Virus record (IMG/VR): IMGVR_UViG_3300006931_000029
Coordinates: 124,001-188,000 of that record
Length of the DNA stretch: 64,000 bases
Reading direction: 5' to 3' (one strand)
Part shown: piece by piece, positions 1 through 38,909 of the stretch
Numbering within the stretch: the stretch's first letter is position 1
How the letters are laid out: each line of letters starts with the position of its first letter
Notes under the pieces: model-generated
What the model was told of the DNA's origin: nothing
The model's database searches: none
The model's input: the letters and a program-made list of their open reading frames with translations, nothing else
Made by a program: the position numbers and the translations under genes

Positions 1-129
1 GCATCCTACGAGTCCCATGCGGACACGGACACCAAACATCATCCGCGTGAACCCGATTTCCCAGCGACCACCGAGAGACACCCAGCGGTGGAAGAAATTT
101 TCGTTGGGTTGTGCCGGTTTGAAAACCAT
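1..129 (-). CDS. hypothetical protein, partial (runs off window)
   Basis: ATG at 129, open to position 1 (MVFKPAQPNENFFHRWVSLGGRWEIGF...); TGTTTACA motif 29 nt upstream. Confidence 0.6.
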   Translation of the reverse strand, partial: MVFKPAQPNENFFHRWVSLGGRWEIGFTRMMFGVRVRMGLVGC

Positions 130-164
130 GACTCTATCTTAAGAACGTATCAAAATGTGTAAAC

Positions 165-200
165 AAAAAAAAAGAGGGCAGCTTTCGCCGCCCTCCTTTT
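165..200. terminator. intrinsic terminator, probably bidirectional
   Basis: GAGGGC(174-179)/GCCCTC(190-195) stem flanked by an A9 run and a T4 run, directly after the flotillin stop. Confidence 0.7.
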
Positions 201-223
201 CGGGGGTTTGGTGTAGTCCGGCT

Positions 224-2020
224 TTAGGTCTTCTTTGCCGCGGGCACTGCAGGCGAAGGTGTCGTTTCAACGTCCGTCACCATTCCCGCCATCTGAGCGA
301 GTTTGGACGGGTCCATCTTCAGAAGCTTCAGCAACGGCGTAACGTCAACGCCAGCCGCTTTTGCTTTGAGGAAGAATTCAGTAACCATGCCAGGGATTGC
401 GCCAGCGAAACTGGCGACGCCGCCGCCTTTGCCGTCACCGGTGCCCATGTCAACGATGGAAACATTCTTGATCGCACCCAGCGACGTGCCGAGAGGACCG
501 AACATTGCCGCCAACATTTTAGCGCCGGCATCGCCGCCCTTGTCGAAGAGCACAGGAAGACGATCGAGTACCATGATGAATTTGCCTTCTTCAGATAGTT
601 GCTTCAACGCCTCGGCCAATTTCTCGGTACCTTCAGCTTCGGCGAGAAGAGCAGCGCGTTTACCGTTGGCAACAGCGAGCAATCCTTTCTCAGAACCATC
701 GGCTTCGGCAAGAAGAGCAGCACGCCGACCGTCAGCAGCTGCGAGTTGGTTTGCACGAACACCTTCTGCGATGGCGAGTTGGGTTGCCTTATTGCCATCG
801 GCCTCGGCTGTCAACTTGACGCGTGTCGCTTCACCTTCAGCCGCAGCGATCGTGCGAGTCTTGGACGCGATACCTTCACCTTCCTTGACAGCAGCGTTTG
901 CTTTACCGGTTGCCGTGATTTCCAGTTGACGCGCCGTGCGTTCAGACACGGATTGCTGGTTATCGGCCTCAATGAGGGCAGCTTTGGCTTTCGCCTCAGC
1001 TTCGACGATGATTGTCGCCTGCAGTCTCTTTTGGTTGAGACTAGCCTGCTTTTCCTGCACGGCAATACCAGCGTCAGCGGCTGCGGCGTCTCTGGCCGCT
1101 TCTTTCACCCGGAGATTTTGCTCTTGGGCTGTTTTAGCAATGGCGTTGGCCATATCGGCCTCAGCTTTTTTGCCTTCAGTTTGAACCTTAAACTCGGCAA
1201 TCTGAATGTCGCGTTTCTTTTCGGCGTCAGCGACCATAGCGGCGTTCTGCGCCTTTACCTCGGCCGACTCGCGTTCAGCGTTAGACGTCTTGATGGCGGT
1301 TTCCTTCTTTGCTTCTGCCGTGGCGATTTCAGCATCACGGATGATGGCGGCGGTTTCTTTACGGCCGAGAGCCTTGATGTAGCCTTCCGCGTCTTGAACG
1401 TCTTGCACGACCAGCGTGATGATCTGAATCCCGAGACGGCGGAACTCGTCAGACGACTCTTCAAGAACCTGCTTGTTGAACTCAGAGCGATCCCGAAGAA
1501 TCTGCTCGACGCTCAACTTAGCAATGATGCTACGAACGTGACCGCGAAGGATTTCGCTAATCGTGCTCTTGATTTCTTCGGCGTCTTTGCCGAGGAATGC
1601 TTGCACCGCATTCGATTGTTCGTCGGGATTCGGCGAAACACGGCATGTGGCAACGGCAGTGATGTTAACCGGGACGTTCTTGGCCGTCGGCACCTGTTGC
1701 TCCTTAATTTCCACCTGGAAGGCAGCTGTGCTCATGACCTCGAACCGCTCCACGATCGGCATCAAAATCTTACCACCACCGGTGATGATTTTGAATCCGC
1801 GGATACCGGTCTTCTGAACGGACTCCTCGGTGTAGTTGTACTTGTACTTCCGGCCGTAGAAGACGCCGATGCCGTTCGGCGGAACCGTTTTGTAGCGCGA
1901 TGCGGCAATGAAGCCAACGATCGCGACGCAGATAACGACGGCGATGATTACACCTGGAACGAAAAAGCCACCAAGCAAACCGGGGCTTGCTTGAGCGAGG
2001 AAGAGCATGCTAGTATTCAT
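224..2020 (-). CDS. flotillin / SPFH (band 7) domain membrane protein
   Basis: N-terminal TM helix, SPFH core (LRGHVRSIIAKLSVEQILRDRSEFNKQV...LGIQIITLVVQDVQD...GYIKALG), long AEA-rich coiled coil. Confidence 0.93.
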   Translation of the reverse strand: MNTSMLFLAQASPGLLGGFFVPGVIIAVVICVAIVGFIAASRYKTVPPNGIGVFYGRKYKYNYTEESVQKTGIRGFKIITGGGKILMPIVERFEVMSTAAFQVEIKEQQVPTAKNVPVNITAVATCRVSPNPDEQSNAVQAFLGKDAEEIKSTISEILRGHVRSIIAKLSVEQILRDRSEFNKQVLEESSDEFRRLGIQIITLVVQDVQDAEGYIKALGRKETAAIIRDAEIATAEAKKETAIKTSNAERESAEVKAQNAAMVADAEKKRDIQIAEFKVQTEGKKAEADMANAIAKTAQEQNLRVKEAARDAAAADAGIAVQEKQASLNQKRLQATIIVEAEAKAKAALIEADNQQSVSERTARQLEITATGKANAAVKEGEGIASKTRTIAAAEGEATRVKLTAEADGNKATQLAIAEGVRANQLAAADGRRAALLAEADGSEKGLLAVANGKRAALLAEAEGTEKLAEALKQLSEEGKFIMVLDRLPVLFDKGGDAGAKMLAAMFGPLGTSLGAIKNVSIVDMGTGDGKGGGVASFAGAIPGMVTEFFLKAKAAGVDVTPLLKLLKMDPSKLAQMAGMVTDVETTPSPAVPAAKKT

Positions 2021-2599
2021 TTATTCGACAATAAGGGTTGATCCTGAAACTGAGACGACTCTGACTTCCCGCCCGCGTGAAATAAGCAACTCAGTCATCC
2101 TCGCTCTGGCGAAGAAAGTTGTGTATTGACCACTGACAGAAAGAGCAACTTCGCCGGTACCGCCTGGCACAATGTCAATCGTGACGGTGCCGGTTCTGCC
2201 GACAGCAGAGTCGATGTCCAAATTAGACGAGGCTTGCTGGCTGTAGAGCATGCGCAACATTCCGATCATCAATCCGCCAAGGCTCATACCGGATGCAAGA
2301 CCGACAAGCGATGAGCTCGTAACGCCAAGACCGTAGACGGTTGATAAGGCGCCGCCAGCTCCGAGACCAACGCAGAAGAGCGCGATGATCTTTGGCGAAA
2401 AGATGCTCACAGTTGCGTGGCCCGAATCTCCGCCATGATCGGCGTCATGGTCGTGCTCGTGACCGCCGTCGCCGTGTCCACCGCCGCCGAATTGGCCGAG
2501 TATCCAAGCAGCGACGAGGTAGACCATTCCAACTGCGATGCACAGCGAGAAGACAAGAAGTTGCGTTGAGTCACGCAGGGCGTTGATGAATGAATTCAT
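2021..2599 (-). CDS. nfeD: NfeD-like membrane protein (short form) with His-rich loop
   Basis: Probable start MNSFINAL at 2599; 3-4 TM helices, HGDGGHEHDHDADH loop, C-terminal OB fold (VGRTGTVTIDI...GEV...ISRGREVRVVSVSGSTLIVE); abuts flotillin. Confidence 0.85.
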   Translation of the reverse strand: MNSFINALRDSTQLLVFSLCIAVGMVYLVAAWILGQFGGGGHGDGGHEHDHDADHGGDSGHATVSIFSPKIIALFCVGLGAGGALSTVYGLGVTSSSLVGLASGMSLGGLMIGMLRMLYSQQASSNLDIDSAVGRTGTVTIDIVPGGTGEVALSVSGQYTTFFARARMTELLISRGREVRVVSVSGSTLIVE

Positions 2600-2838
2600 G
2601 GGAATGTTTGAGAACTGTAACGGTCTGGAAAACTTTGAGGGTACGGAAAGTGTTGAGGACAATCCCGGTTTTTGCAGTTGTCGTCGGCACAGATGTACTC
2701 TTCGCGCCATTGACGCTCGTAGATTCTGCAGGCAACTTCAAACGCTGCGTCGTCCACGTACTCTTCGCGTTGTGGTGCGCCATTCGGGTACGACGTGGTC
2801 TTCTGTAGCCAAAACTTCTTGACGACGATCTTGCTCAC
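2596..2838 (-). CDS. hypothetical protein
   Basis: 80 aa, ATGA-type overlaps with both neighbours. Confidence 0.6.
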   Translation of the reverse strand: MSKIVVKKFWLQKTTSYPNGAPQREEYVDDAAFEVACRIYERQWREEYICADDNCKNRDCPQHFPYPQSFPDRYSSQTFP

Positions 2839-3332
2839 TTGATCAGCGGGAGTTTGATCCGCGGAGACTTACGAGGACGCCTCTTGTTTTCAACCATCTT
2901 CTTCAGGATGGCTGTCCGATTCGCCTTGGCCGACACCAGAGATCGCTCGAGTGATCTGATATGGCCAACAGCTTCCGCGTACGCCACGCGGACAGAATGG
3001 TCGTGAAGCCGATTCCTGAACGTGTCGTCGTCCAGCCGCTGCTGAATCAAGCGCCGGAAAATGCGTAGAAGCGATCGGCGATGGCGGGAGTCCCATGCGA
3101 CGTGGTATGAACCCCGAACGCCGTGGATATAGGCGTGCCCTGACGAATACTTCTCAGAGACCCAGTAGCCGCGAACCCTCATCAGCTCTGGAGAAGGCGG
3201 TTGCTTCTGATCCGTCTGCGCCAGTTGAAAATCTGCCGAATGAACGTAAATCTTACCGCTGTGGCAGAGGAATTCCAGGGTAGCGGAATTGCCCTTGTCG
3301 TCCTTGGCTTTAGTGAAAATCGATTGATTCAC
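2835..3332 (-). CDS. hypothetical protein
   Basis: 165 aa, in operon; GTTCT motif 8 nt before the GTG start. Confidence 0.65.
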   Translation of the reverse strand: MNQSIFTKAKDDKGNSATLEFLCHSGKIYVHSADFQLAQTDQKQPPSPELMRVRGYWVSEKYSSGHAYIHGVRGSYHVAWDSRHRRSLLRIFRRLIQQRLDDDTFRNRLHDHSVRVAYAEAVGHIRSLERSLVSAKANRTAILKKMVENKRRPRKSPRIKLPLIK

Positions 3333-3382
3333 GAAGCCAGAGAACGTAGTCTGGCTAGCCAGGATTCAAAATTGTTTACGAA

Positions 3383-3694
3383 TCAGTTAATAGGCAACCT
3401 AGCTCTGTCTGGAATTCTCAACTGCTTGCCAGTTGGAATGTCCAGAAACGGATCGGTGAGATTGTTCACTTGAGCAATCGCCCACCACAATTTAGCCGTG
3501 CCGTAGAAGCTGAACGAGATGCGATCAAGCCTATTCTCGGCGCCTTGGCGAACGGTGTAAATCTGGTCAGTTGCAGCTGGCAGCACCACCGGTTGTTGGA
3601 GTCCAAGGACGATGACTCCACCGACGTCGTAAACCGGCGTCTTGCTGAACATCGAAAGACTTGGAAGTGGGACCTTCTTAACCGATACGGCCAT
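3383..3694 (-). CDS. baseplate wedge protein, T4 gp53/LysM-like
   Basis: RLDRISFSFYGTAKLWWAIAQVNNLTDPF...GKQLRIP signature. Confidence 0.75.
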   Translation of the reverse strand: MAVSVKKVPLPSLSMFSKTPVYDVGGVIVLGLQQPVVLPAATDQIYTVRQGAENRLDRISFSFYGTAKLWWAIAQVNNLTDPFLDIPTGKQLRIPDRARLPIN

Positions 3695-3699
3695 TTGCC

Positions 3700-4059
3700 C
3701 TAAGTATCACTCTTCTGGTCGCTCCGAACTAGCTTGAGAAGGTGACCGTATCTTCCTGTGAATCTTTCCACCTTGAGCGGAAACGACGGCTCCTCAATCT
3801 TCGAAAATCGTGAAGCCGTCAGGCACGGTTCGTAATTTTTTGGCCCACCTTCAGGCGGGGATCGTCGACCTATTTTCTCGCCATGCGGTGCGAAAACGAT
3901 TAGGTCGATGGTGCCGTCCGACCAGGTTTCTTTAACCTTTCCGAACGTTGGGCTATGATCGTCCGTGTGATCTTTGACCCAGTCTCCGGTTTTGAACGGA
4001 AACTTATTTTTCTGTGTTTGCTTTAGGGGCAAGTTTTTCCTTAAGAGCCAGTTCAACAA
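3700..4059 (-). CDS. hypothetical protein
   Basis: 119 aa, fills the gap; start uncertain (overlaps the ATPase end). Confidence 0.55.
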   Translation of the reverse strand: MLNWLLRKNLPLKQTQKNKFPFKTGDWVKDHTDDHSPTFGKVKETWSDGTIDLIVFAPHGEKIGRRSPPEGGPKNYEPCLTASRFSKIEEPSFPLKVERFTGRYGHLLKLVRSDQKSDT

Positions 4060-5866
4060 CGTTGAGATATTTCGAAACCTTTAGCACCATGTCCGAAGAA
4101 GGTTGTTTCTTCTTCGCAACGGCGTAGTACTTGGTCAACTTGATTAAATTGCGAACAGAACGACCTGCGATAGGGCCGAAGTGCTCAACGAGCCTTCCTA
4201 CGTCAGCGTCCGTGAAGTTCACAGTGAGTTGCTTTGAGAGCATTGTCCAAAGACTAGGAAGCAAGTCAGTCGTGGGTAGCTCGTAATGAAGATGCGCCGT
4301 CGCTCGGCTGAGAATAGCGTCGTCGATGTCATCACCAAGATTTGTGGTCATGAACATGATGCCGCGGTAGTATTCAAGAACGCGCAAAAACACGCCGACA
4401 ATCGCATTTTGTTGGATGTCGTCTCCACGCCGACGAACGTAGACATCGGCCTCGTCTAGCAACAGAATCGCCTCCCATCGCGCAGCCCTAGACAACACAC
4501 GCAGTAGGTTTTTCTCCAGCTGTTCAGGATCAATGCCCAACTGGGAACATTGTACTGAGTAAAACGGTTTTTCAAACGCCTCGGAAGAGGCTTCCGCTGT
4601 TAGCGTTTTTCCTAGCCCTGGACCGCCCGAGCAAATGGTGATGATTCCTCTGGCTTTTCCGCGTACGATGTCGCTGATGTTGACAGTCGTGGACGACAGT
4701 AGGATTTGAATGAACTCCATGTCCGATTCCGGAAGAATCAGCTTCTCCCAAATCGCTTTGTCATACTGATAAGGAATGATTGAATTCGCAGCCACGAAGA
4801 TGTGGAAATCTCGTTGAAGGTCGAACATACGCACGACAGGAATGGTTGGAACAACCGGATTTTTGATATTCCAGAAGTCGCTGCTGTCGTTGTCGTCATC
4901 GCCATCTTTGATTTCAAAACCGGTGGCCTTGTTGAAATCGTCGTCGTAGCCCTCCTCTTCGCAGTCATCCAGAACCAATCTGGATGGCAAACCTTCTACA
5001 GTCAAAGAAACGGTTTTCTCTCGCTGCCACCGGTAGTAGCTGTTCTCGTCCTGTTGAATAGAGATTCCTTCGATAGATTCATCTGATGGAATCCACTGAG
5101 TCCCGACCTTATCCGCAACAGCCGAGTAAGCCCTGTAGCTCTCCTGGTAAGACTTCATGAGCATCGGGTTGCTCAAGTAAAAATCGGCTCTAGCTAAGAC
5201 GGTATCCAACGACACGCCGTCTTGTTTGCGATCTTTCTTGCGCACTATGCGAGTCCTTCCCTCATCGTCTCCATCATTGTCAAGGTCGTCGTTGTCGATG
5301 TCAGACATTAGCGACACGCTACCGTTTCTGAACACGTTGCCGTAGATGTTGTACGTGTCCGTGCATAGGCGTGGGTTCTCCTTGCCGATAATAGCGCTAG
5401 CGCTAACCGTTACGCGCTCCGTAGTTCTGCGACTCGGCGCGGTGTACTCGATAGATGAGACAAACAACGGCGTCTCGAGATAGCCCTTGATCTTCACGAA
5501 AATCCAGCGATGCTCACTTGTCTTTTCGATGGCAGTTTTTAGCACCTTCGACAGCGTAAGTAGGTCGTGGATTTGAACTGATTTTGGGTCAAAATTAGCA
5601 GCTTTCGTTGCCTCTTGGAGTTGGTTCATGCTTCGAGCACGGCGCTCGAGCTCTTTGAACTCGCGATAGACACGAGCAGAGCCAGGAACCTTTTCGTTCA
5701 TGTCTTTAGACGCCAGCTTCTTGACGGCTTCAAGCTGATCCACCGTGGCGTGCGCCAATAGCGCCTCTTCGTCAATCGACCAATGCTCCTTATTCCATGA
5801 TTGGGATGCCTTCCCTTTCTTCAGCGCTTCCTTTAGGAGGTCGGCATAACGGTTAATGATTTGCAT
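4004..5866 (-). CDS. AAA+ ATPase
   Basis: Walker A GGPGLGKT, Walker B LLLDEAD, sensor FMTTN, DDAILSR arginine finger. Confidence 0.9.
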   Translation of the reverse strand: MQIINRYADLLKEALKKGKASQSWNKEHWSIDEEALLAHATVDQLEAVKKLASKDMNEKVPGSARVYREFKELERRARSMNQLQEATKAANFDPKSVQIHDLLTLSKVLKTAIEKTSEHRWIFVKIKGYLETPLFVSSIEYTAPSRRTTERVTVSASAIIGKENPRLCTDTYNIYGNVFRNGSVSLMSDIDNDDLDNDGDDEGRTRIVRKKDRKQDGVSLDTVLARADFYLSNPMLMKSYQESYRAYSAVADKVGTQWIPSDESIEGISIQQDENSYYRWQREKTVSLTVEGLPSRLVLDDCEEEGYDDDFNKATGFEIKDGDDDNDSSDFWNIKNPVVPTIPVVRMFDLQRDFHIFVAANSIIPYQYDKAIWEKLILPESDMEFIQILLSSTTVNISDIVRGKARGIITICSGGPGLGKTLTAEASSEAFEKPFYSVQCSQLGIDPEQLEKNLLRVLSRAARWEAILLLDEADVYVRRRGDDIQQNAIVGVFLRVLEYYRGIMFMTTNLGDDIDDAILSRATAHLHYELPTTDLLPSLWTMLSKQLTVNFTDADVGRLVEHFGPIAGRSVRNLIKLTKYYAVAKKKQPSSDMVLKVSKYLNVVELALKEKLAPKANTEK

Positions 5867-5936: not shown

Positions 5937-8006
5937 ATGGCTAGAAAGACAGGTAAAAACACCAAGGAGAAACCACTATCTCGAATCGAAAAGGCGATTG
6001 AGGAAGTGATGAAGGGCGAGAACGCCGATCCGCTGTTGCAGAACTTATCCTCTGATGACCAAAAACTTCTCCAGGAAGCACTAGCCGAGTTACGGTCCAG
6101 TCCAGATATGGCCGACGCCTATCTGAAGGACCTATGGCGTTTGGACTACGAGCGGCGTCCACCGTCCATGCAAGAATTCCTCGAAGACCCCTACTGGCTT
6201 GGGGGATTGATGATGAAATCCGAGGAGTCGGAAGGTATGTTTCCGATGTGGAAAAAGCTTCTGTGTCAGGACTTCGACCTGGATTCGCGCGTCCACAACC
6301 TGGTTGTCTCTGGTTCTCTCGGCATCGGTAAGACCTTCGTAACCGTCACGATCTTGCTCTATCGGATCGTTCTCGCCCGGTGTTTGCGTAATCCGCAAGC
6401 ATTCTTCGGTCTCACGAAGGGATCATCCATCTTCTACGCCACGCTATCTGTCACGCGGTCGGTCGTGCAGGAAACCGCCTTCGGTGACTTCCTGAATTTC
6501 ATGACGAACTCGCCCTTCTTCGTGGAGGAGTGTCATTTCAACCCCGAGAAAAAGTACGCCAACTTCCGCATCTCGATCGGCCGAGGAATCTACCTCACGG
6601 CTGGTTCTCAAGGTTGGCACATTATTGGTCGTAACGCAATGGGCGTTGCGTTGGACGAAGGTAACTTCCGTCTCGAAGCCAATCCTGACCTGAAGGCGTA
6701 CAAACTCTATGATGAAGTTCGTACGCGTATTCGTAACCGTTTCCAGCGGATGGCAGGATTCTTGCCGGCTATTTCGATTCTGTCGTCCTCAGCTCGAGAC
6801 GAGTCTTCGTTCACAGAGCGTGTCAAAACGGACATCGAGAAGAGCAAGAAGACCGATCCGGACCAACGCATCTACTCCTATCCTGTTTATGTCATCAAGG
6901 AGCATACGCTGGTTCTCTCGTCCAAGTGGTTCAAGGTAGCGTATGGCCTAAAAAACGTTGATCCTTACGTCCTCAAAGGCATCTACGACAAGAAAGGAAA
7001 TCCTCTGGAAGGTGAGCCTCACGAAATATCACCGCCCGGCGCCAGAGTGGAATTGGTGCCGGAGAACTACAGAGAGGACTTTCGGCGCAACGTTAAAAAC
7101 GCTCTTCAAAACGTTTCTGGTATCTCGACCGGCGGTTCGTTCAGGTTCCTAAGCAATCAAATCGATTTGGAGAAGGCCATTGAAGCCGGCGAAGCGAATG
7201 GAATTGTGGCACCTCACACGATCCTGTCACTGCCCATTTCAGAGGAAGACCAATCCAACATCTGGGACTATCTCAATGCAAAACTTTTTCTCACGAAGCA
7301 GATGAGTCGTCTGCAGCCGAAGCGAGACCCGTTCGCGGCACGCTACTGCCACATCGACTTGGCGACTCGAACACAAGCCGGCATTTCTGTCTGTCACGTT
7401 GCTGGGAAACAGTTGGTTCAAGGACTAGTTCGAGACGGCGGCGAAGTGTTCGATGAGTACAGAGTCGTCGTGGAATACGACTTCATTCTATCTGTGGTCG
7501 CCGGCAAGTCAAAGCCAATCTCGATCATCAAGGTGATCAATTTCCTATACTGGCTACGTGACGTGTGCGGATACCGATTTGCCCTCGTGACCGCCGACCA
7601 ATTTCAATCTGCGCTTCCACTGCAGATGCTGGAGAACAAAGGCTTCAAGATCGCTAACCTCTCTGTGGATCGTTCAAAGAAACCGTACGAAGCATGGAGA
7701 GCTGGGTTTGAGGAACGCCGCATCAGAATGTTCCGCCATGAGATTCTGATGCAGGAAGCCGAAAACCTTTGCGATCTACCGGACAAGGTTGATCACTTGC
7801 CGGACCAAACCAAGGACGTGTGCGACTCAGCAGCTGGTTGCTACTATTCGGCGATCACGTTCAAAGACGATCGAGTGACCAACGCCGCGCACGGAGCAGA
7901 GCCGTCCATCTACACGAACCTGAACAATGACGATGGCGAACCACCGCCGGTGTCAGTCGTCGATTTGAATCAGTACAAGAAGCCCACAAAGAGCTTTAGC
8001 GTCTAA
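5937..8006 (+). CDS. terL: terminase large subunit (T4 gp17-like)
   Basis: Walker A VVSGSLGIGKT, Walker B VALDEGNF, coupling motif LSS, RNaseH-like nuclease residues HIDLA, TADQFQS, TKDVCDSAAG. Confidence 0.9.
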   Translation: MARKTGKNTKEKPLSRIEKAIEEVMKGENADPLLQNLSSDDQKLLQEALAELRSSPDMADAYLKDLWRLDYERRPPSMQEFLEDPYWLGGLMMKSEESEGMFPMWKKLLCQDFDLDSRVHNLVVSGSLGIGKTFVTVTILLYRIVLARCLRNPQAFFGLTKGSSIFYATLSVTRSVVQETAFGDFLNFMTNSPFFVEECHFNPEKKYANFRISIGRGIYLTAGSQGWHIIGRNAMGVALDEGNFRLEANPDLKAYKLYDEVRTRIRNRFQRMAGFLPAISILSSSARDESSFTERVKTDIEKSKKTDPDQRIYSYPVYVIKEHTLVLSSKWFKVAYGLKNVDPYVLKGIYDKKGNPLEGEPHEISPPGARVELVPENYREDFRRNVKNALQNVSGISTGGSFRFLSNQIDLEKAIEAGEANGIVAPHTILSLPISEEDQSNIWDYLNAKLFLTKQMSRLQPKRDPFAARYCHIDLATRTQAGISVCHVAGKQLVQGLVRDGGEVFDEYRVVVEYDFILSVVAGKSKPISIIKVINFLYWLRDVCGYRFALVTADQFQSALPLQMLENKGFKIANLSVDRSKKPYEAWRAGFEERRIRMFRHEILMQEAENLCDLPDKVDHLPDQTKDVCDSAAGCYYSAITFKDDRVTNAAHGAEPSIYTNLNNDDGEPPPVSVVDLNQYKKPTKSFSV

Positions 8007-8041
8007 TCTTTTTTGTTTACATTTTCAACCCACGTGTTCTT

Positions 8042-8278
8042 ATGGCCGACATGGTTGATCCAGTCGAACTCGACAAGTTAGTTGCGGACGCGCTTAAAAA
8101 CGCGATCGAGAACGGCTATGACGAAGTTCGGACCGACGAGCCACGCATCGTTGCGATGGACCTTATGTCCAATGATTCTTTCATCGAGACGAAGATGTCT
8201 GAGGTGGAAGACTTGGAAGAAGCAATCGGCATCGTCACAGCTGCTGTCGAACGCTGGCGCATCGAACACCGGTTTTGA
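8042..8278 (+). CDS. small acidic hypothetical protein
   Basis: 78 aa downstream of the TGTTTACA motif at 8014. Confidence 0.65.
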   Translation: MADMVDPVELDKLVADALKNAIENGYDEVRTDEPRIVAMDLMSNDSFIETKMSEVEDLEEAIGIVTAAVERWRIEHRF

Positions 8279-8279
8279 T

Positions 8280-8579
8280 ATGGTCGAGCTCTTCTTCAAA
8301 GCCACGTGGATTCCGGACATCAAGAAATTCCACGTCCAGTTCAAATGCAAAGGTCACACTCACGTTGAGATGATGGAGCAAGACCGTTACTTTGCGTTCT
8401 GTGATTCGCTCGATGACAGATTGGAAGTAGCTGGATGGAAGATCGAATTTCTACCTCACGGCAACAACGACCCGATTTTCACTGACAAAATCGTGGTTGC
8501 CTTGAGACAGTATTTTCGGGACATCCGCCGAAGCTACGAACTGTCGCTGCAGGGTAGTCCAACAATTTTTCATCTCTAA
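8280..8579 (+). CDS. hypothetical protein
   Basis: Probable start MVELFF at 8280, 1 nt after the upstream stop. Confidence 0.6.
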   Translation: MVELFFKATWIPDIKKFHVQFKCKGHTHVEMMEQDRYFAFCDSLDDRLEVAGWKIEFLPHGNNDPIFTDKIVVALRQYFRDIRRSYELSLQGSPTIFHL

Positions 8580-8580
8580 C

Positions 8581-8656
8581 GCTTCGATAGCTCAACTGGT
8601 AGAGCAGGGTTCTCTAAAAACCTTGGTTGTGGGTTCGATTCCCATTCGAAGCGCCA
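8581..8656 (+). tRNA. amber suppressor tRNA (anticodon CUA), tRNA-Trp-like body
   Basis: 76-nt cloverleaf: GCTTCGA/TCGAAGC acceptor, GCTC/GAGC D stem, GGGTT/AACCT stem with loop CT-CTA-AA (anticodon 8614-8616), GTGGG-TTCGATT-CCCAT T arm, G73, encoded CCA. Confidence 0.93.
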
Positions 8657-8666
8657 TATTTAGTCC

Positions 8667-8924
8667 ATGTCGGACGAACGCAAACTAGTCTCTGTCGATG
8701 AGATTGCCAAGCTACTTGCTAACGAAAACGGCGACTGGCCGTTTTCCGTCGAAGGTGACCAAGTCGAACTCGTCATCGAGAGCAACGTTTACACTCTTTC
8801 GAAAGAAGAATTCAGTCAACTCCAGGACGCGGCGAAGACGGTCAGTTGGAGAGAGTATTCGAACGGCGAACAGGTGGAGTCTGAAACTCCAGAAGCCCTG
8901 GTCGACCGGCTGCTAGACAGTTAA
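8667..8924 (+). CDS. acidic hypothetical protein with C-terminal PxxLVDxLL tag
   Basis: 85 aa ending ETPEALVDRLLDS. Confidence 0.7.
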   Translation: MSDERKLVSVDEIAKLLANENGDWPFSVEGDQVELVIESNVYTLSKEEFSQLQDAAKTVSWREYSNGEQVESETPEALVDRLLDS

Positions 8925-8992
8925 CAGCAGGCAAATAAGTTTTTTACTTTCTCGTTTACAATCGCGAGAAAAAGTATCCATGCTTGACTGTC

Positions 8993-9307
8993 ATGGATAA
9001 AACCTTCTTCCTATTCGATAGAAAAGAAATCGAGGGTTGGAAAGTACGCCTAGCGATGCTATGCCAATCCTGCCCTGTTCACGGTCGACACCCAGACTTT
9101 TGTCCTCTCCTCGAGCTTTCAAAATTAAAGCCTGGGGACCAGATAGACTTCATCAAAACGCTTCCTGTAGACGCTTTGAGGTACGTCTTGGCTAGACACG
9201 AAGTATGCATGGAAAACGAAGTTGGCAAATCGTTAAAAGACGCGTTAGTTAGTTCAAATGCTGACTCGTACGCGTTCTACGAATCGGTTCAAGTCGCTCG
9301 AGCATAA
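8993..9307 (+). CDS. Cys-containing hypothetical protein
   Basis: MDKTFF...CQSCP...CPLL...RHEVC; ATG lies inside an 8-bp inverted repeat. Confidence 0.65.
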   Translation: MDKTFFLFDRKEIEGWKVRLAMLCQSCPVHGRHPDFCPLLELSKLKPGDQIDFIKTLPVDALRYVLARHEVCMENEVGKSLKDALVSSNADSYAFYESVQVARA

Positions 9308-9467
9308 CCCTTCGAGAGAACAGAGGATTGCCGAGCTAGACCGTTGCACGTTATGGAATTACTGGCTAATCGAAGATGGCGAGCATTCGGCGGTGGATTC
9401 CAACAGAGTCCGAGAAAGGATCAACAGACTGTTGGATGCTAGGCTCTACCTTATGAAAAAGGTTTGA
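9258..9467 (+). CDS. hypothetical protein
   Basis: 69 aa filling the gap; start uncertain. Confidence 0.4.
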   Translation: MLTRTRSTNRFKSLEHNPSREQRIAELDRCTLWNYWLIEDGEHSAVDSNRVRERINRLLDARLYLMKKV

Positions 9468-9539
9468 GTTGAATTTGTTTCACTTTTTTTGTTTACATTG
9501 ACGAAGCCTTAGGCATTGTCGATGACGTTCTACTTCACC

Positions 9540-9803
9540 ATGAAATCCGAAAACTAGGTTCCTACCGTCGCCGATGAGGTGACGTTCCACTTCAACAAGG
9601 CCCATCTCACGGACTCCACGATTCCGATGTGGGTTCTCAAGTTGAAGGGTCAAACCTACTACGTTTCGCACGTTTCGTCCACGGCTCCATGGAGCACCAA
9701 GGAAACGCCTGACAACCCTGCTACCAAGGGTTCTCTCAAGTTCAAGAAGGTCGTGGTCTCAATCCACGACGGTGAAGCGGTCATCGAACCGATTGCCGCA
9801 TGA
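9540..9803 (+). CDS. conserved phage protein with in-frame amber at codon 6
   Basis: ATG AAA TCC GAA AAC TAG GTT... in frame with ORF 9579-9803 (FHFNK...IPMWVLK...PWSTKETPDNP.TKGS); ATG has the GTTCT upstream motif. Confidence 0.7.
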
Positions 9804-9812
9804 ACCAATTTT

Positions 9813-9908
9813 GGCAGAGTCGCCGAACGGTGAGCCGCAAGGCTCTTCAGGCCCGGGTGTCCGGAAGGAGACTCGTCTATGTAGGTTCGAATCCTACCTC
9901 TGCCTCCA
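9813..9908 (+). ncRNA. tRNA-derived RNA (Cys-like body) without an anticodon loop
   Basis: GGCAGAG/CTCTGCC-T-CCA acceptor, GTAGG-TTCGAAT-CCTAC T arm, GCC/GGC D stem with inserted GAGCC-GCAA-GGCTC hairpin, CGGGT/ACTCG stem capped by TCC-GGAA-GGA. Confidence 0.75.
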
Positions 9909-9910
9909 AT

Positions 9911-10041
9911 TTCCCTGTAGCTCAGAAGCTTTGCGAAGTCGCCCGCAGATCACGGGATGACGACGCAAATACCGTCGGCAACGACGAGGTAGAGCGGCCG
10001 GTTCTAACCGGAGTGTCGCTGGTTCAAATCCAGTCAGGGAC
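9911..10041 (+). ncRNA. tRNA-derived RNA (Asn-like body) with 62-nt D-loop insertion
   Basis: TCCCTG/CAGGGA acceptor, GCTC/GAGC D stem, CCGG-TTCTAA-CCGG arm, GCTGG-TTCAAAT-CCAGT T arm; insert at 9926-9987; no encoded CCA. Confidence 0.75.
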
Positions 10042-10050
10042 TTAATTTCC

Positions 10051-10434
10051 ATGAAAGCTGAAAACTAGGTAGATGAAACGCTGAGGCTCTACGTGATCCT
10101 CAGAAACGACGCTGGAATGACGCCCGGCAAGATGGCTAGTCAGGCATCTCATGCGGCGGTTCAAGCGAGCCTGGACTGCCTGGGCAGAGCCCCGGATCGA
10201 TTCAAGCGGTATCAAGACGGAACCTTCGGCACGAAGGTCGTCCTCCACGCTGACGAACTCAAGATGCGCTGGCTCTTTGAGCTGGCGACTGAGCGTCAGA
10301 TTCCCTGCGCCCTGATTGAAGACAGCGGCCATGCCGCGTTTCACGACGGGCGCCCAACCACCACCGCACTCGGCATCGGTCCCATTCAACGGCACGAGAT
10401 GCGAGAGCTGAAGAAACTGGAGCTCGTCAAATGA
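10051..10434 (+). CDS. pth2: peptidyl-tRNA hydrolase, PTH2 family, with in-frame amber at codon 6
   Basis: LRLYVILRNDAGMTPGKMASQASHAA, TKVVL, IEDSG, TTTALGIGP are PTH2 motifs; the only in-frame ATG ahead of the first beta strand is 10051, followed by TAG at 10066-10068. Confidence 0.88.
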
Positions 10435-10440
10435 ACTAGC

Positions 10441-10638
10441 TCACTCTTCATCGGAGTCGAGACCCGCCTTCTTGCGAGCGCACGAAATCGCATAGTCCTT
10501 CATGGACCTGCAACGACCGCCGAAGCTACACCACTTCGTTTCCATAGAATCTCCGCAGCAACAAACGTCATCATCGCAGTCTCGGTAGGCTCTTTCGATC
10601 CGCCGAGCAATCAAAAATCTCTGAACCCGCACTATCAT
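10441..10638 (-). CDS. Cys-rich hypothetical protein
   Basis: DCDDDVCCCGDSM...WCSFGGRC; fills an otherwise empty gap. Confidence 0.45.
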   Translation of the reverse strand: MIVRVQRFLIARRIERAYRDCDDDVCCCGDSMETKWCSFGGRCRSMKDYAISCARKKAGLDSDEE

Positions 10639-11104
10639 GAATCTCACCCAAATCAACGACAGTATCAACGCAGGCATTTACGCCAAGAACTTCAGCTACG
10701 CTTCGCCTTTCTCAAAAGGTGCTTATCTAGAATTTCGATTGCAATGGAAGGAAACCTACGCTCGCATCTCGAAAGCGATCCGTGCCAATAAGGCACTTGA
10801 GAAGGAATTTCAACGGTCACTCGTTGGTCTTTCCAAGTTAACCGCCGAGCAGTCGGCCATCCTCAAGGAGCAAGCAAAATTCGAACTACCGAAGTCCATT
10901 GGCTTCGTGCAAGTCACTGCTCCGAATTCACCAGGATGGTTGCCAACGTCGTGGCGGCTGAAAGCTACGGCACACTTCCTGCTCGTCCTCAACAAACAGA
11001 TGAAAATCGAGGCCGAGAAACAGTATCAGGATTCCCACGCCGTGTCCGGACAACCGGACGCGAACGCCTTACGCCAATCGAGCACGGGTCCCAACTTGTC
11101 GTGA
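10637..11104 (+). CDS. hypothetical protein
   Basis: 155 aa, protein-like composition. Confidence 0.55.
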   Translation: MNLTQINDSINAGIYAKNFSYASPFSKGAYLEFRLQWKETYARISKAIRANKALEKEFQRSLVGLSKLTAEQSAILKEQAKFELPKSIGFVQVTAPNSPGWLPTSWRLKATAHFLLVLNKQMKIEAEKQYQDSHAVSGQPDANALRQSSTGPNLS

Positions 11105-11322
11105 AACTCCCTGGCATCCGAATCGGAGTCGGGTGACCAGTTTCGAACGAATGCCTGAAGGTACGCCTTGCTGTCGTTTAGTACGGCAGCAAGGTCCTTG
11201 CGAAACTCGCCGGCGTCTTCGCCGGCTGGTTCGAATTCATGGATGAAGGTTTCGAGTGGGGAAGCCGCCTGGTCGTTCACTGACGCCTCAGACTGTTCCC
11301 ACGAGGGAAGTTTACGAATCAC
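11026..11322 (-). CDS. hypothetical protein
   Basis: Coupled (GTGA) to the phosphoesterase; overlaps the convergent gene. Confidence 0.55.
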   Translation of the reverse strand: MIRKLPSWEQSEASVNDQAASPLETFIHEFEPAGEDAGEFRKDLAAVLNDSKAYLQAFVRNWSPDSDSDAREFHDKLGPVLDWRKAFASGCPDTAWES

Positions 11323-11918
11323 GCTGAACTAAGAACAGTCCGTCCACGGTCGCCGGTCGTATCGGCGTTGTGGTGATCGACCGGTACCCAGGTCTTCGTC
11401 GCCATCTTTGCTTGGATTTGCTCTACGGTCAACGGGCGGAAGTCCCAACAGTCTACACCCACGTCGAACTGGCGCGCGTCCTGAGGATCAGGAAGAGTCC
11501 CATGGCTGTGCCCATACAGTTGCCAAGCGCCATGATGGCTCTTGTTCCAAACCTTCATCGCGTAGTGGCACAGCGTGATCGCCTGCTTGATCGTCTTGCC
11601 ATCCTCTTGGATTTTGACTTCGATCTCCAGAAGTCCGGCGACATTCTTGAACCGGTTAAGGCAGCGGAGCGCTCGATTCTCATGGTTACCCACGATCAAG
11701 ACGATGTTGCCGTTAAGCTTTTCGAGATACTGTTCGGCCGGACCGCCGCCTACTGCAAAGTCTCCGAGATGGTAAACGGTATCGCCGGGTTGGACGATTT
11801 CATTCCAGCGCCGGATCAATTCATGATCCATCTCCTCGGCCGTAGCAAACGGACGCTTGGAATACTTGATGATGTTAGCGTGCCCAAAGTGGGTGTCGCT
11901 GGTGAAAAACTGTCTCAT
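11319..11918 (-). CDS. calcineurin-like metallophosphoesterase
   Basis: SDTHFGH, YHLGDF, GNHE, LCHY, YGHSH, DVGVD motifs. Confidence 0.92.
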   Translation of the reverse strand: MRQFFTSDTHFGHANIIKYSKRPFATAEEMDHELIRRWNEIVQPGDTVYHLGDFAVGGGPAEQYLEKLNGNIVLIVGNHENRALRCLNRFKNVAGLLEIEVKIQEDGKTIKQAITLCHYAMKVWNKSHHGAWQLYGHSHGTLPDPQDARQFDVGVDCWDFRPLTVEQIQAKMATKTWVPVDHHNADTTGDRGRTVLSSA

Positions 11919-37997: not shown

Positions 37998-38021
37998 GGT
38001 TATGGTGGGAGGACCTATCTA

Positions 38022-38909
38022 CTAGGCATTAACCTCCGCCATTTTGCTGCGAACCTTGTTAGTCATTTTGCTCCGAAGCTTAATTTGCTTCGACCACAAC
38101 CAGCATCGAATACGATCAGGAAAATTCACGGCTCTCAGCCAGAACCGGTAGAAAGGAGTGACATACTTCCATTCGCCGAGTGGGCGAGACGGGAGGTGGT
38201 TCAGCTTCTTGATGAGACGAAGCATGCGATCGTCATCACGTTCTCTCGACGAGCACAAGTTAGCCGCACAGAGTTCTGCGCCGTGCGCAAGCGACAACAA
38301 CCAAAGGTGTTCGTATCCTGCGGGGCTGAGAATGTGGTCGATTGACCGCTCGCTCAAACAACCACTCATCTTCAAGATGGTTTGCTTGAGTGGGAACTTA
38401 CGCGAAGAGAATAGGTCAGTGCCGATGATAGTCATGCGCGGTGCATCGGGTTTCTGCCATGCGTCCAACGTCTGCTCTGAGCAGCGGATCAGGACGTCGA
38501 GAGCCTCGAGAGAGGAGAAACCGACCACCGAATTGTTTGTGAGGAGACCAGAACTCCAGTCGTTCATCTTGAAGACTTCGCGGGCACAGGCTGCACGGTT
38601 TGCCTTAGGCACAGGCAGCTTGAAGTCCTGACGATTCCAAACCAGCACGTCGGAGTCGACCCAGTAGACCGCCTCGTAGAGTCCGGTCTTGAGGTGTGAC
38701 CGAACAAGCTGAAGACGACAGATGTCCGAGCGGGTAACCTTGGTGAAAGGAGCGCGGCAGTATTGCTTCGCGAAGTCGAACAGTTCGTCACCGACGTAGA
38801 GGTACTTGTAACCGCGGATGAACGCCCACGTCTTCACGCTGCTCATGCACGCTTGAACCCAAGCTGCAGGGTTCGGACGGCTCGACTGGAGGACAAGGAT
38901 TGGCTTCAT
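38022..38909 (-). CDS. GT-A fold glycosyltransferase (nucleotide-diphospho-sugar transferase)
   Basis: SVKTWAFIRGYKY, KVTRSDICRL, VYWVDSDVLV (DxD), NNSVVGF. Confidence 0.7.
   Translation of the reverse strand: MKPILVLQSSRPNPAAWVQACMSSVKTWAFIRGYKYLYVGDELFDFAKQYCRAPFTKVTRSDICRLQLVRSHLKTGLYEAVYWVDSDVLVWNRQDFKLPVPKANRAACAREVFKMNDWSSGLLTNNSVVGFSSLEALDVLIRCSEQTLDAWQKPDAPRMTIIGTDLFSSRKFPLKQTILKMSGCLSERSIDHILSPAGYEHLWLLSLAHGAELCAANLCSSRERDDDRMLRLIKKLNHLPSRPLGEWKYVTPFYRFWLRAVNFPDRIRCWLWSKQIKLRSKMTNKVRSKMAEVNA

Follow-up and report, generated by a model that had tools for sequence, protein, structure and literature searches.

We analysed a 64,000-nucleotide (nt) stretch of viral DNA, hereafter the window, from the IMG/VR contig IMGVR_UViG_3300006931_000029 (224,954 base pairs, bp), in which a transfer RNA (tRNA) with anticodon CUA is followed by two small protein genes, each starting with an ATG, a few codons and an in-frame TAG. 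The second of these genes encodes the peptidyl-tRNA hydrolase PTH2, and the first, here termed gene A, belongs to an unnamed family; genes with such a leader stop are called gated below. The locus falls within a short plus-strand island at about 5.9–11.1 kilobases (kb) of the window, most of whose genes lie on the minus strand. Its features are:

8010–8021, plus strand: promoter-like motif TTTTTGTTTACA, 5′ of two small open reading frames (ORFs) and the tRNA-CUA, found by motif counting
8581–8656, plus strand: amber suppressor tRNA, anticodon CUA, with an encoded CCA end (ARAGORN; Rfam tRNA, 65.8 bits)
9486–9497, plus strand: promoter-like motif TTTTTGTTTACA, 42 nt 5′ of ATG 9540
9540–9557, plus strand: leader 1, ATG AAA TCC GAA AAC TAG (MKSEN and UAG), from sequence reading and pattern count
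9558–9803, plus strand: gene A body, 81 amino acids, of the FHFNK...WSTKETPDNP..TKGSLKFK family (whole gene A, 9540–9803)
9813–9908, plus strand: tRNA-like RNA between the two gated genes, with acceptor stem, T arm and CCA and no credible anticodon arm
9911–10045, plus strand: second tRNA-like sequence; its D loop has an insertion of about 57–60 nt and its anticodon loop is 6 nt long (TTCTAA)
10051–10068, plus strand: leader 2, ATG AAA GCT GAA AAC TAG (MKAEN and UAG), from sequence reading and pattern count
10069–10434, plus strand: PTH2 body, 121 amino acids after the UAG (Pfam PF01981, E = 1.4e-18, 67.6 bits; 2zv3; whole PTH2 gene, 10051–10434)

An initial annotation, made from the sequence alone, had described the RNA at 8581–8656 as a tRNA with anticodon CUA, and this was confirmed. 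ARAGORN called a 76-nt tRNA with anticodon CTA and the CCA end encoded, and the match to Rfam RF00005 covered the full model (positions 1–71) at 65.8 bits against a gathering score of 29. The RNA has the canonical cloverleaf, a 7-nt loop CTCTAAA with U33-CUA-A37, an acceptor stem and a T arm. Its closest annotated relatives are the tRNA-Pyl(CUA) of phage Phosso and a mycobacteriophage tRNA-Trp. The 'Pyl' label is only ARAGORN's name for anticodon CTA, and the window tRNA scores like any ordinary tRNA; when the ORFs around it were scanned with Pfam, zero matches and hence no Pyl gene were seen, these scans not being aimed at a pyrrolysine system. By BLAST against phage records it was Trp-like and another was Lys/Asn-like, and an isotype assignment by nearest neighbours among 171 other phage tRNAs was abandoned because the answers were inconsistent.

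The two leaders are near-identical, as first noticed from the sequence. Searching the window for the pattern ATGAAANCNGAAAACTAGGT gave exactly two matches, one at 9540 and one at 10051, and a tolerance of three mismatches added no others; 0.03 were expected from shuffled sequences. The repeat spans 22 nt, 20 of them identical, and in both copies TAG is codon 6, followed by G and in frame with the downstream ORF (TAG 9555–9557 with an in-frame GTG at 9579; TAG 10066–10068 with an in-frame GTG at 10093). An extra in-frame ATG at 9522 could extend leader 1 to 11 codons (MTFYFTMKSEN-stop). This ATG is created by an 18-nt direct repeat before ATG 9540, absent from the closest relative, in which window positions 9522–9540 copy the sequence encoding VTFHFN in gene A (9580–9597; 16 of 18 nt identical). 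The near-identity of the two leaders is lineage-specific and probably due to recent copying. An exact 20-nt leader scan of IMG/VR recovered the source contig and otherwise only chance matches in AT-rich phages, so the nucleotide motif itself is not the conserved feature.

The motif TTTTTGTTTACA occurs in nine exact copies in the window (158, 5921, 8010, 9486, 27256, 29039, 36284, 43198 and 57050), with 13 matches at two mismatches against 3.9 expected. Several copies lie shortly 5′ of a same-strand ORF start, and the motif is probably the phage's own promoter element. The promoter initially proposed near ATG 9540 is thus the copy at 9486. Because another copy ends 20 nt 5′ of ATG 8042, the motif would sit near the transcription start, which places leader 1, 42 nt beyond its copy, inside the likely transcript. 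PTH2 has no TTTTTGTTTACA motif of its own and probably shares the transcript of gene A; no sigma-70-type promoter was found in 7900–10700. Shine–Dalgarno (SD) sequences precede only 3 of 81 window gene starts, below the 7.5% random background. The window lineage thus initiates without SD; most other gene A carriers have strong AGGAG motifs. A GTTCT start context, which the initial annotation had taken to be the phage's own, proved not to be general among its gene starts.

Conservation of the leader stop in gene A and PTH2

A protein-pattern scan of IMG/VR yielded 208 gene A loci, of which the best 80 were read together with loci from other searches (labels such as L016, L097 and L112 denote phage contigs or loci from these comparisons). 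The leader anatomy is conserved. Among 73 non-identical copies on other phage contigs, 69 have an ATG, 0–8 codons and a TAG in frame with the body, and neither TAA nor TGA stands at the leader stop in any of the 73. A single apparent TGA-leader copy (L112) turned out to be ungated, with an ATG of its own. Copies that keep the TAG share only 50–70% identity, and 65 of the 69 gated copies have an SD-like motif 5′ of the leader ATG. The base after the TAG is A in 60 of the 69 and G in nine, never C or T. For amber suppressors in Escherichia coli, a purine 3′ of the stop favours suppression.

Coding constraint extends up to the stop on its 3′ side. The nine codons from the TAG to FHFNK are conserved as protein (I-E-Y/F-A-C-K-D/E-V-V) through synonymous changes, and pairwise nucleotide differences in the post-TAG region are distributed 1519/1419/3477 over the three codon positions. 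A canonical start is missing between TAG and FHFNK in 28 of 81 copies. The codon-position pattern and the missing starts together indicate that the sequence right after the stop is translated in that frame, and the only good initiation site of gene A is, as far as sequence can tell, the ATG 5′ of the stop.

The closest relative of the window, the 7.1-kb contig L016, has proteins 70–75% identical to those of the window and the same order of tRNA-CUA, promoter motif, gene A, tRNA-like RNA and PTH2, with the TTTTTGTTTACA motif likewise 5′ of gene A. Its gene A leader reads ATG AAC AAC GAA TCG TAG GTC (MNNES-stop, TAG at codon 6) and its PTH2 leader ATG AAT ATC GCA GAA CCA TAG GTT (MNIAEP-stop, TAG at codon 7). 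The leaders have thus diverged in sequence, that of PTH2 in length too, and the TAG and its frame have been retained. Of the M-K-x-E-N leader noted in the initial annotation, then, the short leader and its stop are kept in relatives, and the peptide is phage-specific.

The PTH2 family repeats this design. The window protein matches PF01981 at 67.6 bits (cut-off 23) over profile positions 2–108 of 115, the Methanocaldococcus jannaschii Pth2 structure 2zv3 with E = 8.4e-13 and human Bit1 (1q7s) with E = 3.9e-9. Both PF01981 position 2 and 2zv3 residue 2 align to R6 after the TAG. Since GTG 10093 corresponds to V9, the domain starts 5′ of this GTG, which agrees with the initial observation that the first strand begins upstream of the GTG chosen by ORF calling; no ATG, GTG or TTG lies between TAG 10066 and GTG 10093. 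Across four phage homologues compared with one another, K21, D85, H88, D93 and T99 never vary. All 13 phage PTH2 relatives have a leader ATG, 2–7 codons, an in-frame stop and then the enzyme, and an SD-like motif precedes the leader ATG in the 12 loci outside the window's lineage. In eight related jumbo-phage contigs the leader peptide is M-(L/I)-x-N-S-F-L, with 64 synonymous against 25 nonsynonymous codon differences, and the region after the stop differs 79/52/222 by codon position. With constraint on both sides of the stop, PTH2 leader and body behave as one frame with an invariant internal stop.

A leader of this kind could also be a separate mini-ORF, at which termination is followed by re-initiation nearby, the suppressor tRNA being unrelated. 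GTG 9579 and GTG 10093 are in frame, the second corresponding to an ATG in L016; ATT or ATC directly follows the TAG in most relatives; and the ORF that precedes PTH2 in L016 finishes with an ATGA overlap, as is typical of coupled genes. Coupling, however, needs no particular stop or frame, yet the stop is TAG in 69 of 69 gated gene A copies and always in frame, in phages where TAG is a rare stop. Besides the 28 of 81 copies that offer no canonical start, the codon after the stop is ACT, GTA, AAA or AAC in some, the stretch from the stop to the first possible GTG encodes conserved residues, and the PTH2 fold begins before GTG 10093. Re-initiation also leaves unexplained the match between a TGA leader and a tRNA-UCA in phage Atu_ph07, described below. 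We rejected a start at GTG 10093 backed by its upstream GAGG, which carries no weight in a phage that initiates without SD sequences (present at 3 of 81 starts). Since many copies lack a start and the identity and frame of the stop are fixed, coupling of termination and re-initiation at an upstream ORF does not describe these loci, and we regard it as very unlikely. An inverted repeat, CTGAGG...CCTCAG (window 10079–10101), flanks GTG 10093 and is kept in L016; it may be a hairpin around this internal start candidate or a by-product of the codons for L-R-L-Y-V-I-L-R.

The leader stop and the phage suppressor tRNA

Gated genes and suppressor tRNAs occur together. Of 63 non-identical gene A loci, 37 have a tRNA-CUA within 4 kb, in every case on the strand of gene A and at a median of 504 nt upstream; for PTH2, one lies within 3 kb upstream in 7 of 13 loci. 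The co-occurrence of leader and tRNA-CUA, which the initial annotation proposed to check, therefore holds for these loci and not for the other 26 gene A loci, which show none within the 4 kb available. In the complete genome of the Rhizobium phage RHph_I1_18, an unannotated gene A (ATG AGT GAG TTC ATG TAG AAC) ends 18 nt 5′ of an annotated tRNA-Pyl(cta); in the first 100 kb of this genome, scanned for amber-leader genes, it was the only convincing case.

The stop also matches the anticodon of the suppressor. In Phosso the PTH2 leader stop is TAG, and a tRNA-Pyl(CUA) is annotated elsewhere in the genome. The PTH2 leader of Atu_ph07, in turn, reads ATG ATT GGC GAA CAC TTT TGA, and the one suppressor tRNA among the 33 tRNAs of this phage has the anticodon UCA (PMC6102473).

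This match bears on the possibility that the early stop senses host release-factor activity or termination efficiency, with readthrough by near-cognate host tRNAs. The prfB gene sets a precedent for an early in-frame stop as a sensor, and the 26 of 63 loci with no tRNA-CUA in the DNA available would fit such a sensor. Against it stand the tight, same-strand linkage to tRNA-CUA and the change of the stop to TGA in precisely the phage whose suppressor reads UGA. In bacteria, moreover, near-cognate tRNAs normally read through UAG only at a very low level. A release-factor sensor of this type appears highly improbable.

The phage as a whole uses the standard code. Code 11 gives tight gene packing across the window, treating TAG as sense lengthens ORFs, in the window as in related loci, no further than the TAA control does, and TAG still terminates 7 of 90 confident window genes. 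We therefore rejected a TAG-recoded (code 15) phage, and no TAG recoding was apparent in any related locus. In the seven TAG-ended genes the median distance to the next in-frame stop is 8 codons; the corresponding values are 23 for genes ending in TGA and 47 for those ending in TAA. In addition, a 295-amino-acid minus-strand gene ending at 38022 (window 38019–38024) closes with two consecutive TAGs. This hints at a back-up against the phage's own suppressor, in a sample too small for significance.

A scan of the 64-kb window for an ATG, at most 12 codons, a stop and an ORF of at least 60 codons, a check like one proposed with the initial annotation for the whole genome, returned only the two leaders as convincing cases. 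Across about 100 loci examined for a leader, a stop and an ORF, only the gene A and PTH2 families recur, and the design itself recurs in about a hundred related phage sequences. These counts can be set against the idea that the stops are tolerated nonsense codons, not a regulatory device, which drifted in after the suppressor was acquired and represent a first step towards a code change of the kind suggested for recoded phages. In-frame stops 'detoxified' in this way after suppressor acquisition have been modelled (Borges et al. preprint), N-terminal leaders would be the most tolerant positions, and ungated copies exist. Under drift, however, TAGs would be scattered across many genes and positions, with frequent reversion. 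What is seen is a single TAG at one and the same place in 69 of 73 copies at 50–70% identity and again in a second, unrelated family, with an invariant purine after the TAG and no other recurrent family with such stops. We consider drift improbable.

Other tRNA-like RNAs lie beside the gated genes. The one at 9813–9908 is 96 nt long with a 7-bp acceptor stem and has a counterpart in L016 (3296–3391). ARAGORN calls it 'tRNA-Glu(ttc)', which conflicts with a GNRA-capped hairpin, GAGCC-GCAA-GGCTC, that covaries with GAGTC-GCAA-GACTC in L016; RNAalifold on these two sequences found three compensatory pairs, and Rfam aligns just the acceptor, D and T arms (31.6 bits). The sequence at 9911–10045 is called a tRNA by ARAGORN only with its insert removed in silico ('?(Arg|Pyl)(ct)'), and we grouped with it the sequences L058 3723–3799, L063 and L116 322–398. 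In other phages, intact tRNAs with an odd 6-nt (or 8-nt) CTA loop lie about 140–220 nt 5′ of amber-gated gene A, with no normal tRNA-CUA nearby. These may be a variant class of suppressor.

A putative readthrough gate and its possible purpose

Taken together, the sequence comparisons make it likely that the phage pairs its tRNA-CUA with a tiny amber regulon, in which gene A and PTH2 are made by UAG readthrough and dosed by suppressor activity. Each gene would initiate at its ATG and meet the in-frame UAG a few codons later. When the suppressor is absent, RF1 would release a useless peptide of 2–11 residues; when charged tRNA-CUA is present, the ribosome would read through the UAG and complete the protein. 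If readthrough is required in this way, the output of both genes would depend on how active the suppressor tRNA is relative to RF1. Because the stop lies in a dispensable N-terminal leader, any inserted amino acid would be tolerated and aborted products would be nearly cost-free. We infer that readthrough does occur and is needed. The initial proposal that selected proteins would depend on the suppressor without recoding of the genome is strongly supported by the 69 of 73 gene A copies and 13 of 13 PTH2 relatives with a leader stop, by the co-located tRNA, by the joint switch to TGA and UCA and by the standard code.

Several observations weigh against this readthrough model. Gating is not obligatory, as four gene A copies are ungated and start with a Met close to where the TAG would stand; three of these four nevertheless have a tRNA-CUA within 1–1.5 kb. 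In 26 of 63 gene A loci the 4 kb available show no tRNA-CUA, though many of these loci lie within large tRNA arrays of part-read contigs. The covariation of stop and anticodon rests on a single TGA case, that of Atu_ph07. Finally, the L016 codon that matches GTG 10093 is an ATG, and a slightly truncated PTH2 made from this internal start is possible in that phage.

The purpose of the readthrough gate may be to tie two proteins related to translation or tRNA, in dose or timing, to suppressor activity. In this scheme PTH2 would remove peptidyl-tRNA arising from drop-off or stalling, and gene A would partner the tRNA or the decoding step. Candidate purposes are a hold on expression until the tRNA has matured and been charged, a coupling of the PTH2 dose to peptidyl-tRNA that suppression itself induces, and a feedback loop through gene A.

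What the gene A protein does can be approached through its distribution and company. The protein database holds 385 clusters of the family, all unnamed, and no Pfam or PHROG family covers it. Among 185,579 species genomes it occurs seven times, each time in a metagenome-assembled genome (MAG) record and in five cases on a contig of at most 7.6 kb; the family is therefore probably phage-restricted. A sequence profile search of the PDB gave only marginal similarity to WW domains (E = 0.006–0.4). The AlphaFold model is all-beta (predicted local distance difference test score, pLDDT, 94.9; predicted template-modelling score, pTM, 0.81), and had no match among PDB folds (best E = 0.67). In BFVD, the only fold matches were phage proteins that are themselves uncharacterised, together with a domain that phiRSL1 carries fused to a P-loop kinase.

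Both Atu_ph07 and Phosso encode a protein of about 175 amino acids whose C-terminal half is the gene A domain. This protein lies in what appears to be an RNA-repair operon (L097 and L098, respectively, at about 1–4500), which encodes an RnlA-like ligase, a NUDIX protein, gated PTH2, a hypothetical protein, the gene A fusion and a kinase-phosphatase that combines a P-loop kinase AAA_33 with Metallophos. A metallophosphatase is also encoded in the window (11319–11918, minus strand). Gene A is very highly conserved across phages of 27–54% guanine-plus-cytosine content. This conservation and the operon company suggest that it is a partner in conserved translation or tRNA machinery.

Under a more elaborate reading, tRNA-CUA and gene A would together be a mobile, conserved module of two parts: the gene A protein itself would act on UAG decoding, and its synthesis, being amber-gated, would close a feedback loop, with PTH2 co-gated. 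The protein could counteract RF1, or serve as an escort or protector of the suppressor tRNA; the feedback would set or flip the reading of UAG in the infected cell, and co-gated PTH2 would clear the resulting peptidyl-tRNA. That ungated gene A copies still adjoin tRNA-CUA, and that the gene A fold is fused or adjacent to RNA-repair kinases, would fit such a module, which we nonetheless put forward only tentatively and as rather unlikely.

Relation to known systems

The leader stop has left its mark on public annotation. Database entries P0008, P0015, P0025, P0033, P0038, P0046 and others, as well as L110 and L111, show Gln where the DNA has TAG, an artefact that arose because gene callers chose code 15 on short contigs. 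Other public gene A calls start at an internal Val or Met, and in GenBank the PTH gene of each of Atu_ph07 and Phosso is given an internal Met start (MTAGKLASQ...), losing the first strand. These gene A and PTH calls are systematic mis-annotations caused by the leader stop, which explains how standard pipelines miss such genes, truncate them or 'fix' them with code 15.

Like the phage studied here, XacN1, Atu_ph07 and Summit are standard-code phages with a tRNA-CUA or tRNA-UCA. In XacN1, extending genes beyond a terminal TAG revealed no suppressor targets (PMC5852040); the targets proposed here carry their stop at the 5′ end and would be invisible to that test. The Atu_ph07 paper names no specific target (PMC6102473), and for Summit possible targets are said not to have been identified (PMC9022506). 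Nor did we find N-terminal leader stops described as suppressor targets in the literature searched, whose coverage was incomplete. Suppressor tRNAs occur in many cultured phages of the standard code, and their role is a long-open question; gene A and PTH2 would be concrete, conserved targets for them, and the anatomy of these genes provides a rule for finding more: an SD sequence, an ATG, a few codons and a stop that matches the suppressor anticodon. Cultured carriers, namely RHph_I1_18 (Rhizobium), Phosso (Sinorhizobium) and Atu_ph07 (Agrobacterium), make the question testable.

Phages recoded at TAG or TGA are said to have been described in Ivanova 2014, Yutin 2021 and Borges 2021/22. As in the present phage, a phage suppressor tRNA in these viruses (crAss-like, Lak, Jade and similar) decodes in-frame stops in a standard-code host. 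There, however, the stops are many and spread over tens to hundreds of genes with mainly late, structural or lysis functions, and coding density under code 11 collapses, whereas here the code is standard and a single stop lies in the N-terminal leader of one or two small translation-related genes beside the tRNA. Stop-codon recoding in phages has been proposed as a post-transcriptional gate on late genes (Borges et al. preprint). The leader-stop design could be a minimal starting point for the evolution of full recoding.

A likeness in logic is offered by RF2, where an early stop, depending on the state of the decoding machinery, leads either to abortive termination or to the full-length product. 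The RF2 gene, prfB, is autoregulated through an early in-frame UGA and a +1 frameshift and so senses its own product. In the phage genes, by contrast, the body is in frame 0 and a dedicated phage tRNA would decide; we rejected a prfB-type frameshift since leader and body share one frame in the window and in every relative. In lambda, the bar minigenes, ORFs of two to a few codons with a stop, are tied to peptidyl-tRNA drop-off and Pth. They differ from the gated genes in having neither an in-frame protein body nor a suppressor tRNA, and a link to PTH2 is only suggestive.

The layout matches that of synthetic amber switches, which reportedly consist of an ATG, a few codons, a UAG and the protein, with an orthogonal suppressor tRNA controlling output. 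Those switches are engineered and controlled by an unnatural amino acid; the phage design would be their natural counterpart, a natural version of the synthetic-biology amber switch. The leader-stop design is widespread and conserved and would be a variant of phage regulation based on suppressor tRNAs.

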